From the sequence record MT028491.1: a DNA stretch of 64,000 nt. One strand, 5' to 3'. The position numbers and the translations under genes are program-made. Shown here in pieces: positions 18,473 through 53,606 of the stretch (positions are counted from its first letter, which is position 1; the number at the start of each line of letters is the position of its first letter). The notes below the pieces were generated by a model. It was not told the origin of the DNA, ran no database searches, and was given only the letters and a program-made list of their open reading frames with translations.

Positions 18473-20000
18473 TCCACCAATCTTTTTTACTTACTTTGGT
18501 CATAGTATATTTCTGACCTTCGCTATTATAAATTTTCAAACGACTCAAGAAATGTTGCATACAATAGTTTTTAGTCTTATATGACTTACCATTTCGAATG
18601 CAATCTACAATGTCATAAAGTTTTCCGTGAGTCTTATCTTCACTTGTTCTAAGCAAACGCCCAATTGACTGCCAAACTTTAACTTTTGACTTATATGGGC
18701 TTGCAAAAATCATGTTGTTAAATGCCGCAACATTGATCCCGGTTGATGTTGTTCCATAAGAGGCAATTAGAATTGCGTCTTTTGCCTTACCAGATTTGAA
18801 AAAAGCTAATATCTTTTCTCTCTCATCAACCTTGATACCGCCATGGATAATGAACACCTTACGGTTTGTTGCCATCTTAATCAGGTTATAAAGCCCGACA
18901 CCATGACTATCTACGTGCTGGAATAGAACCAGAATGTTTCCATCTAAGGAAAGCGTCAAATCGCGTATATACTCATTTCTGTAAGGATGTGACTTAATGT
19001 ACTCGATTTCTCTCTGATAGTCCTTTGGAACCGTTGTATAAGAAAGATTCTCATAATCTAAAATTTTAAACTCAATATCGAGTTGAGCACTAATTCCGCG
19101 ATCTTGCAATTCCTTGGTAGAAACTGTGTTATAAACGTTTCCAAAATGTCCAACGATGGTTAGCTTATTGACCTCTACATCATCAAACGTTCCAGTTAGA
19201 CCAAAACGATGTGGACAACGCTTGAGCTTTTCCATGATCTTCTGAATCGACTTGGCTTTAGCCCCATGCACTTCATCAACTATCACTTGCTTGATATTGA
19301 TGTACCACTCTTCCGGCAAATCCTTTAGAGACTGCCATGTTGAAATGATAACCTGTCTCTGGAATTCCTTCTCCAAACCACCCATGATGATCTGGCAATT
19401 GTCGTAAGCATTCCAGCTATCATCAAACTTGGAATAGTCTGCAAAATCCCTTAGCATCTGGTTCACAAGATTGACGGTTGGAACGATAATCAGAGACGGA
19501 ACATTGAACCATCTGATTAGCAGATAAATGATCAAACTCTTTCCTGAATTAACAGGTGATAGAAATGAACATCTTCCATAGGCAATAGCGTTCAAAAACG
19601 CCTTTAGCTGGTAATCTCTAGGTAGTCTATCAGCTTCCTTAAGTTTTAAGTCAGAAAAGAATTGTTTGACTTCTTTCAAATCAATATCTTTTTTAACAAA
19701 ATTGGTCTGATTATCGATGGTGTACTTAACACCTTCTGCCCATTTAACAAGGGTTATAACCAGTCCTTTATATAAAGTTCTTTTCTTTACATTGAAGAGC
19801 CGAATCATTCCATCCCAATATTTGAGATTTGGATTAGCTCTTTTCATTACTTCATAGCCATCTACTTTGAATGAGAATTCATCAGAGATTTCTCTTAGTA
19901 TAGCTTCATTGTCGGTAATTACTTCACAAAATACATCATCTATTTCTTTAACGATAATATCAGTCTTATTCTCCACCGTTAGTCCATTTTTTCCATTCAA
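18465..20000 (-). CDS. uvsW: SF2 DNA/RNA helicase UvsW
   Basis: PRDYQ, SPVNSGKS, IVDEVH, GLTGT, ASYGTTSTGIN, QSIGRLLR. Confidence 0.95.
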   Translation of the reverse strand: MNGKNGLTVENKTDIIVKEIDDVFCEVITDNEAILREISDEFSFKVDGYEVMKRANPNLKYWDGMIRLFNVKKRTLYKGLVITLVKWAEGVKYTIDNQTNFVKKDIDLKEVKQFFSDLKLKEADRLPRDYQLKAFLNAIAYGRCSFLSPVNSGKSLIIYLLIRWFNVPSLIIVPTVNLVNQMLRDFADYSKFDDSWNAYDNCQIIMGGLEKEFQRQVIISTWQSLKDLPEEWYINIKQVIVDEVHGAKAKSIQKIMEKLKRCPHRFGLTGTFDDVEVNKLTIVGHFGNVYNTVSTKELQDRGISAQLDIEFKILDYENLSYTTVPKDYQREIEYIKSHPYRNEYIRDLTLSLDGNILVLFQHVDSHGVGLYNLIKMATNRKVFIIHGGIKVDEREKILAFFKSGKAKDAILIASYGTTSTGINVAAFNNMIFASPYKSKVKVWQSIGRLLRTSEDKTHGKLYDIVDCIRNGKSYKTKNYCMQHFLSRLKIYNSEGQKYTMTKVSKKDWWNE

Positions 20001-20397
20001 TATAATTCTTAATGTTGTATGATCGCATATTAATCTGTGAAATTACTTCCTTTAGAAACAATAGCTTTTCTTCCTGATTCCCAATCTGTTTAGACAGGTC
20101 CATATATTCCTTGTCTGCTAGTAGGGCTTTTTCCGCTCTTGCCTGTGTTGTGATTTTCAACTGAAAAGGCGGTCTTCCTATATCTTTGCCATCAATTGCA
20201 CCTTGAAAGTATTGCAATAGTTGTTCGGCTAACACATCGCGTTCGGAAGAAAGTTTTTTCAACGCGAGTTTTTCCAATGTCATTATTTTTAAGTATTTCG
20301 AATGGAGCTTAGGGACTCGAAGTGTCTCAACAGCAATATTAGCTTCGTTGATTTCTGAGTCGTTATCCCAAGCATCCATGATTTCGGATAGCTTCAT
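19966..20397 (-). CDS. uvsY: Recombination mediator UvsY
   Basis: WDNDSEI...VPKLHSKY...IKNYIEWKKW; adjacent to uvsW. Confidence 0.9.
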   Translation of the reverse strand: MKLSEIMDAWDNDSEINEANIAVETLRVPKLHSKYLKIMTLEKLALKKLSSERDVLAEQLLQYFQGAIDGKDIGRPPFQLKITTQARAEKALLADKEYMDLSKQIGNQEEKLLFLKEVISQINMRSYNIKNYIEWKKWTNGGE

Positions 20398-20446: not shown

Positions 20447-20475
20447 ATTCTATCATAATATTATGATAATGTCAA
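20447..20475 (-). promoter_or_regulatory. Sigma70-type promoter for uvsY-uvsW-55
   Basis: TTGACA-17 nt-TAGAAT on the minus strand, about 50 nt upstream of uvsY. Confidence 0.8.
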
Positions 20476-20487
20476 CTCTTTACATAA

Positions 20488-20516
20488 CAAAAAAGGCGGG
20501 TTTTTAGCCCACCTTA
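20488..20516 (-). terminator. Terminator insulating the uvsY promoter
   Basis: Minus strand AAGGTGGG-CTAAAAA-CCCGCCTT-TTTT. Confidence 0.6.
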
Positions 20517-20589
20517 AAAAGTTGTCAAGAGAAATGTTATGAAAAAGATTAATGTTATCAATGAGTTATGACATGCGACAATTTGTCAA

Positions 20590-20618
20590 TTGACATGGTA
20601 TATAAACTTCCATATAAT
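20590..20618 (+). promoter_or_regulatory. Consensus sigma70 promoter pointing into non-coding DNA
   Basis: TTGACA(20590-95)-17 nt-TATAAT(20613-18); no plus-strand ORF follows. Confidence 0.8.
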
Positions 20619-20622
20619 CGCG

Positions 20623-20825
20623 GTAGCGAAGCTACTCAATAAAACCCTTTAGAGTCTGGTTTAAAGATTGTACTAAAATTCCCTTAAAAATTCAAGAAAA
20701 GAATGTAGCGTAGCTACACACCCGTAAGGGTGTTAATTAACACCTTCGGTGTACAAGCTTCGCTTGCTTTATTATATATAAATTATTTTTAAAATAAAGT
20801 CGTGTTAACGACACACCGAAGGTGT
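20623..20825. repeat. Cluster of six short palindromic mini-hairpins plus an AT-rich tract
   Basis: GTAGC-GAA-GCTAC, GTAGC-GTA-GCTAC, ACACCC-GTAA-GGGTGT, ACACC-TTC-GGTGT, CAAGC-TTC-GCTTG, ACACC-GAA-GGTGT; near-pure A/T run 20767-20798. Confidence 0.9.
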
Positions 20826-20839
20826 TCAATAGAATCCCA

Positions 20840-21430
20840 CTAAAATGTTTTATATCTGGTTAAAGACAATTCAATATCTTGAACATCATTCCATTTTTCA
20901 TATGTGCTGGCGATCCTAACCGCTTTGATCCATGATTCAAAGAAATGACGTATAAGGATGTGTTCTCTTGAGCATGAACCTAACACGTATTGATAGGATG
21001 TTTCTCTCAAAAACGCGAACAATGTTAACAGAATGTTTTCATTTTCATCGTTTGGAATCATAAATGTCCAGCGATCAGAATTTACACCTTTCACCGCGAT
21101 TTTTGAATAATAATGACCTATTTCTAATGACAGTGGATAACCACTACCTATAAAATATTCATCATTTATTTTTGATGAAAATTTAATCGATCCATTTTCG
21201 CTTTTAGCTGGAATTAGGTCTGTTCCCATAATATGTGATCCAGTAACCAATTTCAGTATAGGGATTTGCTTAATATCGTAATCGGTTAAATTCAAACTAT
21301 AATCAACAGCCAGATATTCTTTATAATCATGTATGTCCACTGTTCTATAGGTAGATAATTTCAACTCATCAGCCGTCATAGATTGGTAGATATCTATAAT
21401 TTGATTATATGGGTGTTTCTTCATCTTCAA
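20840..21430 (-). CDS. Hypothetical protein (array member 5)
   Basis: 196-aa ORF in an AT-rich co-oriented array; no motif recognised. Confidence 0.75.
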   Translation of the reverse strand: MKMKKHPYNQIIDIYQSMTADELKLSTYRTVDIHDYKEYLAVDYSLNLTDYDIKQIPILKLVTGSHIMGTDLIPAKSENGSIKFSSKINDEYFIGSGYPLSLEIGHYYSKIAVKGVNSDRWTFMIPNDENENILLTLFAFLRETSYQYVLGSCSREHILIRHFFESWIKAVRIASTYEKWNDVQDIELSLTRYKTF

Positions 21431-40859: not shown

Positions 40860-43800
40860 TATTTCTGCAATGCAATGACACGAAGGTCTTTACAACGTGG
40901 AACCAATGAAGTATTTCCGCTAAGAAGGACTACCTTAATTGCAAAATACTTGAAGCCGGTAAACTTAATTCCGTTAGGGTTGGTGTACTGTACTTCTTCA
41001 TTCGGTCCAGTCAGAGCGCTTGAAGGAATAGAGAATTTAAGTTCTCTAAAGTCATTTTCATTATTCTTTGCAGAATAAGAAATTTTGCTTGACTCTTCAA
41101 ATTCTTGCCATTCCAGATTATCAAACAATGTTGAGTCTTCACCATGCAATAGCTTGTAATAGACTTTTACACTTGTTGATGCTGGTCTATATGCTCCAAT
41201 GTAAACCTGTAGGTCTTCCGCGTCTTGGTCTTCATCAAGAGTAACCTTGTTGGTTAGATAACGCGCTAGAGCCTCACCACCATTTGTTCCATCTTCATCG
41301 GTTGCATCATTGTTGATAATGTTCTTGACAAAGATAAGGTTTGACCTTGATAGATCGACCAAAGGACTAATATAATTGTTGAAGGATTCAAAGGCACCAT
41401 TAAAGACTACAGATTTAGTTCCACCCTCATTAGAGAATGATTTAACCATCTTTTCGTCATCAAGTGGTGTATTTTCCTTTACATTTATATATGATGGAGA
41501 ACCATCGGGAGAACCAGCATTGTTAGTTCCAACAAAGTTCCATTCGATATTCGTATTTGAGAATGTCAAATACGATGGTTCGAACTGGATTAAGTTCATT
41601 GCAGGATTTAGAATTGTTGTGATATCAGCTTTAGCCCCTGATAGAATACCAGTGATTTGTCCACCAGTATTTACTAGAGATTGGGCTTTACCACGAATGA
41701 TAGCAGTTGTACCATCTAGCAATTCAAGTTCAAATGTTGGTACGATTACTTCACTAAGAGTTGTAGTACCGGAAATATTTCCAGCAATAACAACATTACA
41801 AATTTCACCAACAACAAATTTTCCTACAACATCTTTGATGTAAACATAACCAGATGAAGTGTTGATGCTTGAAACCAAACCAGTTGCACCAGATGTTTGC
41901 CCTACAAGTTGATAACCGTTAGACAAAGCTACTGTTGAAGCGGTAACACGAACTCTTGTTTCACCTTGAATCAATTCACCCTTGGCAAATGTACCATTGA
42001 TGTTTGAGATATCCAAGAATTCATAATCATCGTTTGACATGCTCATTGATCCAGTCAATGAAGTGAATTCAGCACGATATAGGCGGAATTTCATGTCTTC
42101 ATCTTGGATTGGCGACCATGTACGATCATTTGCAGAGATATACATCACACCAGTATATGGTTGTTCGTTAACAACAGTCTGTGTTGCAATATCTGTTTCA
42201 CCAAGTTTTGCAGTCCATAATGTAGTGTTATTGTTATCTGCAACGGGTTTAACTACAATCGCATATTCTGTCTTGTCTTCAACATAGACAGGAGCCGTGA
42301 ATTTGAATGTTGTTGGAACGGTTCCATCTTCTGAAACTTCAATGTTTGCTGGTGGCAATTCTACTTGAGAATAAGGAAGAATCCATGGAGTTAGGGTGCT
42401 GTTTGCGTCCACTTCACGAATTTCAACAAGTGCACCATATTGAGTGTCTTTATCCTTAAAATAAAGATCAATCTGTGTCAGGAAACAACCGGCAGAAACA
42501 CCTTTAAGATCGATAAGAAATGTTTGTGCAACCGGATCAGGACCACCACCACGTTCACCACCAGAACCAGAAGGTCCACGTGCCTCTGGTGTACTTGTAA
42601 CAACAGTTGAGCTTGAGCTTGATGTTGTTACAGATGAAATAACCTGTGATTCTGTAACAGTATTAACAGACACTTGTGGACGAACAGTTGAAACAATTGT
42701 TGACTGTTTAGTCTGTGATAGACCTTCCGCCGTGTATGTTGATTCCGCTGATGTTGTAACAGCACCAGTTTCTTGACTATTGGTAATGGAGTCTGTTAGA
42801 CGCAATACCTTAGAACCAGTACGGAACTTCTTCTTAGTATTATTTGGCAACATGAAAAGAGCATAAACTTCTCCGTTTTCAGTTGAAACAATACGATCAC
42901 CCAACGCACCTTCTGGATCAAATGATGGAGAAGCCGGAACCATATATTCAGTAACGTTTTCACCGTCAAAGAATGCATATAGTCTGGTTTTTGGCTTAAC
43001 ACCGGTAGCCTTAACACCAATTGGACGTGCGCGCATGTATGGAACAAGGCTAACGTCGATAACACGATCACCATAGCTTTGTGTGGTTGTTACACCGGAC
43101 ACATTCAACTGTGTTCCAGAACGTGTTTGTCCTTGTGACGTAGTTGTAGTGGTTGTGTTAGTTGTGGTTGTTGAAGACTGGCCACGGTTGTTGTTTGAGG
43201 TTGTTGAAACAGAAGTTTCATTAGAAACACCTGTCCAGATTGTTTGCCAATCGCCCCAATTTGTTCCCCAAGCATCAGCAAGAGATTGCCAAGCGGCATA
43301 GTCGCCTGTGTCGTCAATTTGCAAGTCTGGTGCTTGTGTAGTATCGGTCCAATAGTCCTCACTAGGATTTAGGCCCATGTTACCAACAAAGCGATACATA
43401 GCACCAGCCAAATTTCGAGTCGTTGTCGAATAAGGCTGAGAAATGAATTCCTTGTTGCTAAATGGTAGTGTGACAATTCCAGAATTGTTAACAAGACCAG
43501 AAGTGTTTAGAAGTTTGAGCTTAATATTGTTAAGTTCAAACTTTGGACGCATTTCACACTTGGTTGAATCGATAGCGATTGCATAATCAGGATGTGTATA
43601 ATCCGCAACCTTGTGGCTACGGAATGGATCAACCAGAATACCATTCTTGAAACGATTTAGACCGTTTTCATCTGTAATCGTCATGTCAAGAGTGTCTTTT
43701 TCTAGAAGAGAAAGAGACGTATAATATTCAAGGTTGTTAACACGCTGATTGATTACGCCAATATCACGCATTGTATAGCGTTTATTGAAGACCTGTTTAA

Positions 43801-53520: not shown

Positions 53521-53606
53521 GCTAGTGATGACAAATGGGGAGTCCTGCCGCTCATAACGGTATATCCGAAAGGATCAAGTCGGTTCGATTCCGGCCACTA
53601 GTACCA
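53521..53606 (+). tRNA. tRNA with CAT anticodon and long variable arm (Met/Ile2 by anticodon, class II body)
   Basis: Acceptor GCTAGTG/CACTAGT, D stem GAC/GTC, anticodon arm TGCCG-CTCATAA-CGGTA, variable arm ATCC-GAAA-GGAT, T arm GTCGG-TTCGATT-CCGGC, A73 and encoded CCA. Confidence 0.9.

Follow-up and report, generated by a model that had tools for sequence, protein, structure and literature searches.

Hairpins beside uvsY of the jumbo phage vB_OspM_OC belong mostly to one of three copies of a non-coding unit that most likely specifies a small structured RNA

The window analysed here is the first 64 kb of record MT028491.1, the 227,654-bp genome of the jumbo T4-like Ochrobactrum phage vB_OspM_OC, and the locus of interest within it adjoins uvsY. 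Promoters, hairpins, a palindrome and an A/T tract are all present there, far from chance, and every sequence feature listed in the initial annotation was found in its place. The promoter of uvsY, TTGACA-17-TAGAAT on the minus strand (20475..20447), matches the consensus at 11 of 12 positions with a TG-extended -10, and lies as a neighbour outside the repeated unit described below. Just upstream of it (20493..20515, minus strand) is a canonical intrinsic terminator, AAGGUGGG-CUAAAAA-CCCGCCUU followed by U6, and the two together form a terminator-then-promoter composite. The second promoter, TTGACA-17-TATAAT at 20590..20618 on the plus strand, is a perfect sigma-70 match, the only one in the 64-kb window (0.08 expected) and one of two in the whole genome; the two promoters are divergent, as first described. 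Ahead of the plus-strand promoter, a segment of the form ATG.RA.AATTYGT.A. (20568..20589, plus strand) is kept in the alignment of three copies and in copy A, the one beside uvsY, contains the palindromes GACAATTTGTC and TGTCAATTGACA; this segment is possibly a regulator site or an UP-like element.

The predicted start site of the plus-strand promoter, at about 20625, falls inside the first hairpin, H1 (GTAGC-GAA-GCTAC, 20623..20635, plus strand), in agreement with the original observation. H1 straddles this position, has three of its five pairs changed on both sides among the copies, and contains a core, AGCGAAGCU, that is the exact complement of 20756-64 within the last hairpin, H5. It is followed by a nearly invariant block of 30 nt, TCAATAAAACCCTTTAGAGTCTGGTTTAAA (20636..20665, plus strand), in which a weak hairpin, UUUAGA-GUCUGG-UUUAAA, can be drawn at 20648-65, and then by a variable A-rich linker (20666..20703, plus strand; 46-56% identity among copies) that holds a 10-11 nt insertion unique to copy A and the sequence AAGAAAAGAAU common to copies A and B. 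Four compact plus-strand hairpins come next. H2 (TGTAGC-GTA-GCTACA, 20704..20718) has two compensated pairs and a U.G closing pair in copy C. H3 (CACCC-GTAA-GGGTG, 20719..20732) reads ACACCU-GAA-AGGUGU in copies B and C, where a U-A pair takes the place of the C-G pair of copy A along with the altered loop size. H4 (ACACC-TTC-GGTGT, 20740..20752) becomes ACATCC-TTC-GGATGT in B and C, with one compensated and one extra pair. H5 (CAAGC-TTC-GCTTG), with its tail CTTTATTATATAT (20754..20779), is invariant across the copies, is terminator-like and is the presumed 3' end of the RNA. The 16-bp palindrome GGTGTTAATTAACACC noted at first does exist, at 20729..20744, but it is specific to copy A, copies B and C having GTTCAATTAAC at this position, and on account of this restriction it is probably incidental.

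Seven hairpins were confirmed at the locus, the five just described (H5 itself occupying 20754-66) together with GTCGT-GTTA-ACGAC at 20799-812 and ACACC-GAA-GGTGT at 20813-25, but they do not form the single array of six that had been proposed: they resolve into a repeated unit of five hairpins (20619-20775) and a separate minus-strand terminator of p023 (20799-20831). The module of the latter (20789..20831, minus strand) lies directly past the p023 stop codon and consists of ACACC-UUC-GGUGU (20825-13) and GUCGU-UAAC-ACGAC (20812-799), followed by UUUAUUUU. It lies outside the three-copy repeat and is a diverged, inverted copy of the H4-H5-tail module of the unit (nhmmer E=4e-7; inverted repeat), and the presence of this inverted copy directly after the p023 stop indicates that the 3' module of the unit serves as a terminator elsewhere. 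The A/T tract is likewise real, a pure run of 31 nt (20768..20798) that is the longest in the genome; it is composed of the plus-strand U-tract after H5 and the minus-strand U-tract after 20799-812, and the initial assignment of the tract and of two of the six hairpins was mistaken, as these are convergent terminators. As had been noted, the canonical terminators of the genome are hairpins with c(UUCG)g loops of the form AAAAAGAGGC-UUCG-GCCUCUUUUU; six cases are clear. Genome-wide, 15 triloop hairpins have the perfect C-GNA-G form and a stem of 5 bp or more, five of them in this 200-nt stretch and six in the two paralogous loci (11/15 in the three loci).

The unit that contains H1 to H5 is present in three copies, 68-76% identical overall, at 20619..20775 of the window (plus strand; copy A) and at 110308-110455 (plus strand; copy B) and 183800-183649 (minus strand; copy C) of the record; the cluster adjoining uvsY thus belongs for the most part to a non-coding unit of about 150 bases that has a strong promoter of its own and occurs as three diverged copies. 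No fourth copy was found in the genome by nhmmer or by a covariance model. Two weak partial resemblances occur in the genome, one being the p023 terminator and the other a match of 17/19 nt near tRNA-Met at 156.2 kb of the record. The proteins flanking the three copies are mutually unrelated, which indicates that the unit was duplicated on its own and led us to reject segmental duplication as the origin of the copies. Conservation begins about 55 nt ahead of the start site, takes in the -35 and ends about 25 nt beyond H5; it is mosaic, copy A being closer to B in the 5' part and B closer to C in the 3' part. The most constrained parts are the 30-nt block (90-97% identity) and the invariant H5, and this degree of identity indicates purifying selection on both. 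Identity among the copies falls to 45-56% over the H1 region, and the stem is nonetheless retained. The promoter equivalents aligned to that of copy A are TTGACT-18-AATAAT in copy C (10/12 match) and a weak TTGCCT-17-TAAACA in copy B. Copies A and C are directed towards convergent genes, copy C beginning 13 nt past the p161 stop codon, while copy B lies upstream of p346 on the same strand and adjoins a metallophosphatase gene where transcription switches strand. H5 with its tail was called terminator-like in A and C, not in B, and the U-tails past H5 are weak (CUUUAUUAU, CUUAAUCC and CUUAAUUU). The claim that the region is free of ORFs holds for the unit itself, the sole ORF touching copy A being a 30-codon, TTG-start frame on the minus strand (20737-20829) that is not confined to the repeat and also crosses the non-repeated p023 terminator. 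We count the lack of an ORF of its own as evidence that the unit is a gene for a non-coding RNA.

The pairing of the stems is conserved along with their positions. Across the three copies 98.8% of stem cells pair, as against 25-44% when the partners are slid, and six stem pairs are changed on both sides, a number reached by none of 500 shuffles; the covariation set comprises three sequences, and templated mutation in palindromes could imitate compensatory change of this kind. RNAalifold independently recovers the same six hairpins, and folding z-scores lie between -4 and -7.6 for each strand, whether RNA or DNA parameters are applied. Fold energies show no consistent difference between the strands. 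Two wobbles, a U.G that copy C has in H2 and the invariant G.U of the hairpin within the 30-nt block, pair on the plus strand only and favour that strand; as a counter-case, an A.C in the H5 extension of copy A would be a G.U on the opposite strand. The minimum-energy fold of copy A pairs its 5' and 3' ends, although the partner used for this end pairing differs per copy (H5 in A, H4 in B) and the pairing is weak in copy C.

We propose that a self-contained transcription unit occupies the plus strand from about 20568 to 20779 and that it is one of three paralogous genes for small structured non-coding RNAs of about 140-150 nt, a reading of the sequence to which we assign a probability of roughly 0.55. 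It starts from what is established here, namely the three copies, their pattern of conservation, the compensatory pairs and the promoter and terminator matches, and from these we infer the transcription of the unit, the strand used, the ends of the RNA and its action in trans. In this model the host sigma-70 RNA polymerase would initiate early in infection from the consensus promoter, with a start near 20625, and the transcript would cover the 30-nt block, then the A-rich linker and then the four compact hairpins H2-H5, ending at the H4-H5 module and its U-rich tail. The hairpins may act as modules for folding and stability, a role suggested by the conservation of their pairing alone, and the invariant block, exposed as a weak hairpin with a GUCUGG loop, could be the recognition surface for a putative protein or RNA partner. 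Pairing of the 5' end with H5 (through AGCGAAGCU in copy A) or with H4 (in copy B) would give a closed form in which both ends are protected. This model supports and sharpens one of the two interpretations offered initially, a structured RNA of about 145 nt ending at CAAGC-TTC-GCTTG-CTTT, since the stretch in question is the three-copy unit, with its -35 region, 30-nt core and terminal hairpin conserved and its other stems compensated. Copy B, with its poor -10 (TAAACA) and its position upstream of the co-oriented p346, might be a leader instead of a gene in its own right. In a search for an RNA target on both phage strands no convincing duplex was found for the core, the best being with the uvsW mRNA at -24.8 kcal/mol, which is at background level. 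One feature is not accounted for by a small RNA: H1 follows the end of the -10 by only 4 nt in copy A and 2 nt in copies B and C, and an ordinary start would cut its 5' arm, leaving the conservation of this hairpin to be explained otherwise.

The position of H1 is exactly that of one subclass of the PeSLs of T4-type phages, near-consensus sigma-70 promoters with an adjacent stem-loop, which in this subclass stands between the -10 and the start site (PMC2839356), and this likeness leads to the first alternative, in which the unit is a non-genic regulatory cassette. A PeSL-like strong early promoter with its stem-loops would have been spread by recombination and would act between transcription units as a bidirectional terminator or insulator and a site of recombination, the RNA itself being functionless. 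The mosaic identity of the copies suggests recombination among them, terminator-then-TTGACA composites occur elsewhere in the phage (76.6 kb and 205.2 kb are examples), H2 with UCUUUUCUUGAAUUUUU after it resembles a terminator on the opposite strand, and the unit of copy C lies 13 nt past the p161 stop codon; like PeSLs, the units are intergenic and prone to recombination, are repeated in one genome and combine a near-consensus sigma-70 promoter with a conserved stem-loop. PeSLs, however, are short, lead straight into a co-oriented gene through its Shine-Dalgarno sequence and start codon, and number about 50 copies per genome (PMC2839356, PMC4122927), whereas here a structured, conserved non-coding stretch of 130 nt with its own terminator follows the promoter, which in copies A and C points against the flanking genes, and the copies are three. 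Thus the promoter with its adjacent stem-loop is found (H1 4 nt past the -10), but neither the start of a co-oriented gene nor tens of copies in hyperplastic regions. An invariant 30-nt block that is not a stable hairpin is also unexpected for a terminator or insulator, and p023 is already terminated ahead of the unit. We consider such a cassette unlikely.

A second alternative, which we hold to be rather improbable, is that the three copies are RNA-primed replication origins, in which the promoter transcript would form a persistent R-loop in the A/T-rich DNA past H5 and prime the leading strand, resembling T4 oriE and oriF, or ColE1 RNA II with primer folding controlling formation of the hybrid, while the bubble would be held open with the help of stable hairpins with GNA loops on the displaced strands. 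The strongest class of promoter in the genome does lie 150 bp from its longest pure A/T run, the DNA past all three copies is 15-23% GC, H1 spans the start site and hence may act as DNA, and copy B stands at a transcription strand switch like several T4 origins. The phage also encodes RNase H, UvsW and a T4-type replisome (annotation; PMC7139368), and T4 origins consist of a promoter and an A+T-rich unwinding element, with oriE using an early promoter (PMC3016281); adjacency to uvsY, promoter, A+T-rich DNA and a replisome with RNase H and UvsW are what the locus shares with T4 ori(uvsY)/oriF and oriE. Yet oriF uses the MotA-dependent middle promoter of uvsY itself, with the unwinding element inside uvsY, and T4 origins have no common sequence and swappable unwinding elements (PMC3016281), whereas here a -35/-10 promoter fires away from uvsY, the 150 nt downstream of it are conserved in sequence and structure, and the unit exists in three copies; the conserved 30-nt block and pairing would not be needed by a simple unwinding element. 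The plus-strand promoter has a true -35 and lacks the TGCTT box at -30 that marks MotA-dependent middle promoters. GC content past the promoter is 20-47% in the first 80 nt (40-nt windows), and the extreme A/T run begins 150 nt downstream, where it is also read, and fully accounted for, as the two convergent terminator U-tracts. RNA over 20768-98 would be U-rich and form weak rU:dA hybrids, and in copy C the A/T-rich DNA is the 3'-terminal part of the coding sequence of p161. GC skew has no inflection at the locus and follows gene orientation, although skew is uninformative for T4-like phages. Relatives lack the element at uvsY. The suggestion of a transcription-primed origin tied to uvsY therefore did not find comparative support, the other copies lying by unrelated genes, the relatives being without the element, the skew showing no inflection and the promoter being of the -35/-10 type and directed away from uvsY.

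A more specific form of the origin proposal, to which we give still less credence, would make the units a sequence-conserved family of transcription-primed origins with a folded primer RNA as in ColE1 RNA II and with extra-stable GNA-loop DNA hairpins on both displaced strands, among them H1 exactly at the start site, which together would control R-loop formation by the A/T-rich unwinding tract. The likeness to ColE1 RNA II is that a strong promoter would yield a structured RNA able, through its folding, to hybridise or not with the DNA downstream; unlike in ColE1, no partner of the antisense RNA I type that has a conserved promoter is found here, and the RNA would measure 150 nt against the 555 nt of the RNA II primer. 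Were this proposal true, it would be the first multi-copy, structure-conserved type of origin described in a T4-like phage.

Two further comparisons can be treated briefly. Y RNAs are often multi-copy, measure 80-130 nt, have paired ends and carry GNCGAAN0-1G near the 5' end (PMC4201824), and a Y-RNA-like partner of the product of phiOC_p153 (annotated as Ro60-related), with paired 5' and 3' ends carrying the binding site, would agree with the location of copy C 3.1 kb from p153, with the CGAAG at the 5' end of copies A and B, with the pairing of the ends in the minimum-energy fold of copy A and with the general likeness to YrlA and YrlB (small, multi-copy, possible end pairing, a CGAA-containing 5' motif and one copy less than 4 kb from a Ro-like gene), but is very improbable, as the motif is matched by no copy (AGCGAAG in A, UCCGAAG in B, AGCGUAG in C), no tRNA-like domain and no Rfam match is found near p153 or at the copies, copy C and p153 are on opposite strands, the Pfam matches of p153 are DUF2828 and DUF7788 rather than TROVE, and the end-pairing partners differ among copies, with weak pairing in copy C. 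The hairpin promoters of the N4 virion RNA polymerase and the d(GCGAAGC) mini-hairpins have stems of 5-7 bp and 3-nt G-N-A loops closed by C-G, a form that H5 takes on the minus strand (CAAGC-GAA-GCTTG), but the analogy drawn with N4 goes no further than this resemblance, as the hairpins here are spread along the predicted transcribed unit on both strands instead of standing upstream of a start site at a constant distance, and the annotation tables name no giant virion RNA polymerase gene, the largest protein being the 1,502-aa PARP-like p405. A search of the literature brought up nothing on GNA triloops in phage promoters. A minus-strand mirror of the promoter arrangement, TATAAT-AAAG-hairpin at 20776-54, was also considered and set aside as chance in A/T-rich DNA, being without a -35 and not kept in copies B and C.

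Searches of Rfam, IMG/VR, JGI metagenomes and GTDB genomes yielded no homologue of the unit beyond this phage. Rfam gave no match at E<=10 at copy A, nor at E<=5 in a 10.5-kb stretch holding p153 and copy C, its scan of the whole genome at gathering scores returned tRNAs only, and ARAGORN detected nothing at the window locus. Among isolate phages blastn of 1.6 kb returned vB_OspM_OC alone; the best UvsW relatives in isolate phages are about 40% identical, and the UvsY of IMG/VR relatives is 24-28% identical. In Logan contigs encoding a 61-65% identical UvsY and then UvsW, the stretch upstream of uvsY measures only 76-92 nt and contains neither the element nor a match to the model, and the conservation of the hairpin cluster near uvsY in relatives, which the initial annotation had put forward as a check, is thus absent from these contigs. 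Relatives of the metallophosphatase neighbour of copy B (54-56% identity) gave no model match either. A 20-mer of the invariant core has two matches in IMG/VR, both inside coding sequence and judged to be chance, and the two-block pattern of the core has none in IMG/VR, none in GTDB genomes and one chance match in JGI metagenomes. An 18-mer of the core has 23 scattered matches in GTDB genomes, about the number estimated by chance and all scoring on the 18-mer only, none of them from Brucella or Ochrobactrum.

Taken with these comparisons, a new small structured RNA is the likeliest identity of the three-copy unit, ahead of a replication origin linked to uvsY. To our knowledge a role has been established for very few of the small RNAs of lytic phages, and hardly any such RNA has been described from T4-like jumbo phages that infect alphaproteobacteria. 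Within this class the unit is a candidate with unusually good internal evidence, as its three paralogues provide a natural covariation set, its promoter belongs to the strongest class in the genome and its 30-nt core is strongly constrained, and H1, which covers the start site and has its complement in the 3' hairpins, is a concrete oddity. Proximity to uvsY is not a marker of an origin here, which bears on the carrying of T4 origin maps to distant relatives. If expressed, the unit would constitute a new RNA family and would come with a ready mutational design, in which the stems can be altered apart from the core.

We propose, at a probability of about 0.55, that three copies of a non-coding unit in Ochrobactrum phage vB_OspM_OC are small-RNA genes whose structured product is made early by the host polymerase. 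The 1.6 kb around the hairpin locus is 100% identical, at the same coordinates, to this T4-like jumbo myovirus (MT028491.1; 227,654 bp; filed under Kyanoviridae), and the locus is the 442-bp gap from uvsY (19966-20397, minus; Pfam UvsY) to the hypothetical gene p023 (20840-21424, minus), whose neighbouring genes all lie on the minus strand. Promoters, terminators, repeats and mapped origins go unmentioned in the published description of this phage. When the gap was compared with the rest of the genome by blastn, ~20625-20794 (copy A) was found twice more, as copy C (record 110314-110453, plus; between p160 and p161, both minus) and copy B (record 183784-183624, minus; between p346, minus, and p347, plus). 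Searches with nhmmer and with a covariance model derived from all three recovered exactly these copies, the other matches being opposite-strand echoes of palindromic hairpins. The copies are 68-76% identical overall and the proteins flanking the three loci are mutually unrelated, which indicates that movement or duplication involved the unit alone. The structured RNA suggested in the initial annotation thereby gains support, and the two additional copies with conserved pairing extend it to a three-member family.

Just after its promoter each copy carries hairpin H1 (GTAGC-GAA-GCTAC, ATATCC-GAA-GGATAT or ACAGC-GTA-GCTGT), followed by a nearly invariant block of 30 nt (TCAATAAAACCCTTTAGAGTCTGGTTTAAA; 90-97% identity) that can fold as a weak hairpin containing an invariant G.U, then a variable A-rich linker and four tightly spaced hairpins, H2-H5. 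The last of these, H5 (CAAGC-TTC-GCTTG-CTT), is invariant and leads into a U-rich tail, the two together being terminator-like by scan in copies A and C and not in copy B. Pairs altered on both sides among the copies number three in H1, the most strongly compensated stem of the unit, two in H2 (plus one C-G to U-G) and one in H4 (plus one inserted pair), while in H3 a C-G is replaced by U-A and the loop is altered too. These six double-sided changes were equalled in 0 of 500 shuffles, 98.8% of cells were paired in the model-based alignment versus 25-44% when partners were displaced by 1-3 columns, and RNAalifold predicted the same six local hairpins. With three sequences, and with templated mutation able to keep palindromes symmetric, this is good evidence of conserved pairing rather than proof. 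Both strands also fold far better than their shuffled counterparts, whether RNA or DNA parameters are used (z -3.5 to -7.6). Counting either strand, the 227 kb hold 15 perfect hairpins whose stem reaches 5 bp or more and whose 3-nt loop is of C-GNA-G type; 20623-20825 accounts for five of them, and 110.3-110.4 kb and 183.66-183.79 kb for three each.

All the features listed in the initial annotation were found in the sequence, and its divergent promoters were confirmed by promoter scan as TTGACA-17-TAGAAT with TG (20475..20447, minus) and TTGACA-17-TATAAT (20590-20618, plus). The former belongs to an ordinary terminator-then-promoter composite serving uvsY (20447-20515), comparable to others in the genome. 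The latter, a perfect consensus, is the only one in the window (0.08 expected) and one of two in the whole genome; the other, at record 227411 (minus; 13411 of the later stretch L013), is close to the right end, within the ImmA/IrrE-like p413 or immediately upstream of it, and has another TTGACA 20 nt upstream. Copy A has TTGACA-17-TATAAT, copy C has TTGACT-18-AATAAT (10/12 consensus matches) and copy B a poor TTGCCT-17-TAAACA. Conservation among the copies begins ~55 nt upstream of the start site in a common segment, ATG.RA.AATTYGT.A.TTGMC, that includes the -35. Just upstream of this region, and confined to copy A, are two 17-nt direct repeats 18 nt apart (20527-20561; AAGAGAAATGTTATGAA, AAGATTAATGTTATCAA), which may mark a regulator site or have arisen by chance. 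There is a case for the plus strand as the working strand of the unit, as the conserved promoter points into it, H5 has a U-rich tail and two wobble positions pair there only (in copy C a U.G in H2, and in every copy a G.U in the core hairpin); against this, fold energies have no strand bias and one A.C in copy A is G.U on the opposite strand.

The -10 ends 4 nt before H1 in copy A and 2 nt before it in copies B and C. As transcription from E. coli promoters usually starts 7 nt after the -10, the start would fall within the 5′ arm of H1 (~20625 in copy A), and the whole H1 would be absent from this RNA. The predicted first nine bases of the copy A RNA, AGCGAAGCU, are perfectly complementary to 20756-64 in H5, with which they pair in the minimum-energy fold; the 5′ end of copy C matches H5 at 8/9 positions and that of copy B is complementary to H4 over 11-13 bp. 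By this complementarity H1 resembles a 3′ hairpin that has been copied in inverted orientation, which may reflect a closed RNA form with protected ends or simply the origin of the hairpin. A precedent for its position between -10 and start is found in the PeSL cassettes of T4-type phages, which join strong sigma-70 promoters to a stem-loop that, in one subclass, comes after the -10 and before the start site (PMC2839356).

The canonical terminators of the phage, AAAAAGAGGC-UUCG-GCCUCUUUUU, are distinct in kind from the triloop hairpins, as initially annotated; six clear c(UUCG)g cases with symmetric A/T arms lie at record 76591, 91500, 111696, 205194 and 215826 and at window 6587. Those at 76.6 kb and 205.2 kb are directly followed by TTGACA on the minus strand, forming PeSL-like terminator-promoter composites. 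The array of hairpins with an A/T tract is present, yet its last two hairpins (20799-20812 and 20813-20825) recur in neither copy B nor copy C and lie outside the repeated unit. On the minus strand they directly follow the p023 stop codon, as ACACC-UUC-GGUGU, GUCGU-UAAC-ACGAC and then UUUAUUUU. The scan calls this module a terminator, and H4-H5-tail is present in it as a diverged, inverted copy (nhmmer E=4e-7; also found as an inverted repeat). The A/T tract, whose pure run (20768-20798) is longer than any other in the genome, therefore represents the U-tracts of two convergent terminators, and a plus-strand terminator role for H4-H5 is supported by a similar module ending a genuine mRNA. The annotated 16-bp palindrome exists in copy A only. 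In the interval from copy B to the p346 start codon, a hairpin ACCGA-TTATTAG-TCGGT (record ~183590-183606; 19590-19606 of stretch L012), with UUUAAAAAUU after it on the opposite strand, could be a plus-strand terminator for the seg-like p345, which overlaps p346.

It is improbable that the unit is instead a replication origin with a folded primer RNA of the ColE1 type, although such a primer would likewise show conserved hairpins and the strongest promoter and longest A/T run are only 150 bp apart. GC skew merely tracks gene orientation, and the uvsY loci of relatives are without the unit, leaving the proposed origin beside uvsY unsupported. Contigs from public assemblies encoding proteins 61-65% identical to this UvsY keep the uvsY-uvsW-gp55 order with only 76-92 nt upstream of uvsY, or in a third contig 306 nt before the contig end, and none of them matches the unit. 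The unit also appears to differ from T4 oriF, which consists of uvsY's own MotA-dependent promoter and a sequence-independent unwinding element, and from the T4 origins generally, which have no common motif (PMC3016281), on each of these points. A Y RNA is very unlikely, as no copy has the motif GNCGAAN0-1G, a tRNA-like module or an Rfam match, and p153, the 'Ro sixty-related protein' 3.1 kb from copy C (record 105819-107222, minus; 41819-43222 of stretch L010), is on the opposite strand, is DUF2828 plus DUF7788 by Pfam rather than TROVE, and has no Y-RNA-like Rfam match within ~4-5 kb (L010 38000-48500).

Scanning both phage strands for duplexes with the invariant block gave nothing beyond background; its best non-self partner, AACCAGAUGCUAAGGGAUUUU at window 19465-19495 (minus-strand uvsW mRNA, two genes away; -24.8 kcal/mol), barely clears the background tail. 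In IMG/VR, JGI metagenomes and GTDB genomes, exact-pattern scans returned chance matches only, and contigs of relatives with the metallophosphatase that adjoins copy B gave no unit match. Within the phage, ATAGAGTCCGGTTTAAAGCC at record 156199-156233 (minus; L011 42199-42233) matches the invariant core TTTAGAGTCTGGTTTAAAG at 17/19 positions, ~40 nt upstream of a tRNA-Met gene and with the rest of the unit absent. In the tRNA island, record 153535-153607 (49.1 bits; L011 39535-39607, minus) and 148750-148822 (39.6 bits; L011 34750-34822, minus) match the Rfam tRNA model without a tRNA feature in the GenBank record, and may represent tRNA-like elements or tRNA genes missed by the annotation. At window 53521-53606 (plus) ARAGORN calls an 86-nt tRNA-Met (CAT), yet nowhere in the window is the gathering score of the Rfam tRNA model reached; the call may be false or the tRNA atypical.

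In the model we propose, the host polymerase would make the small structured RNA from these units early, with the hairpins as its stability modules and the invariant block as its working surface. As a candidate RNA family, the three-copy unit would be a new family of a general kind already known.
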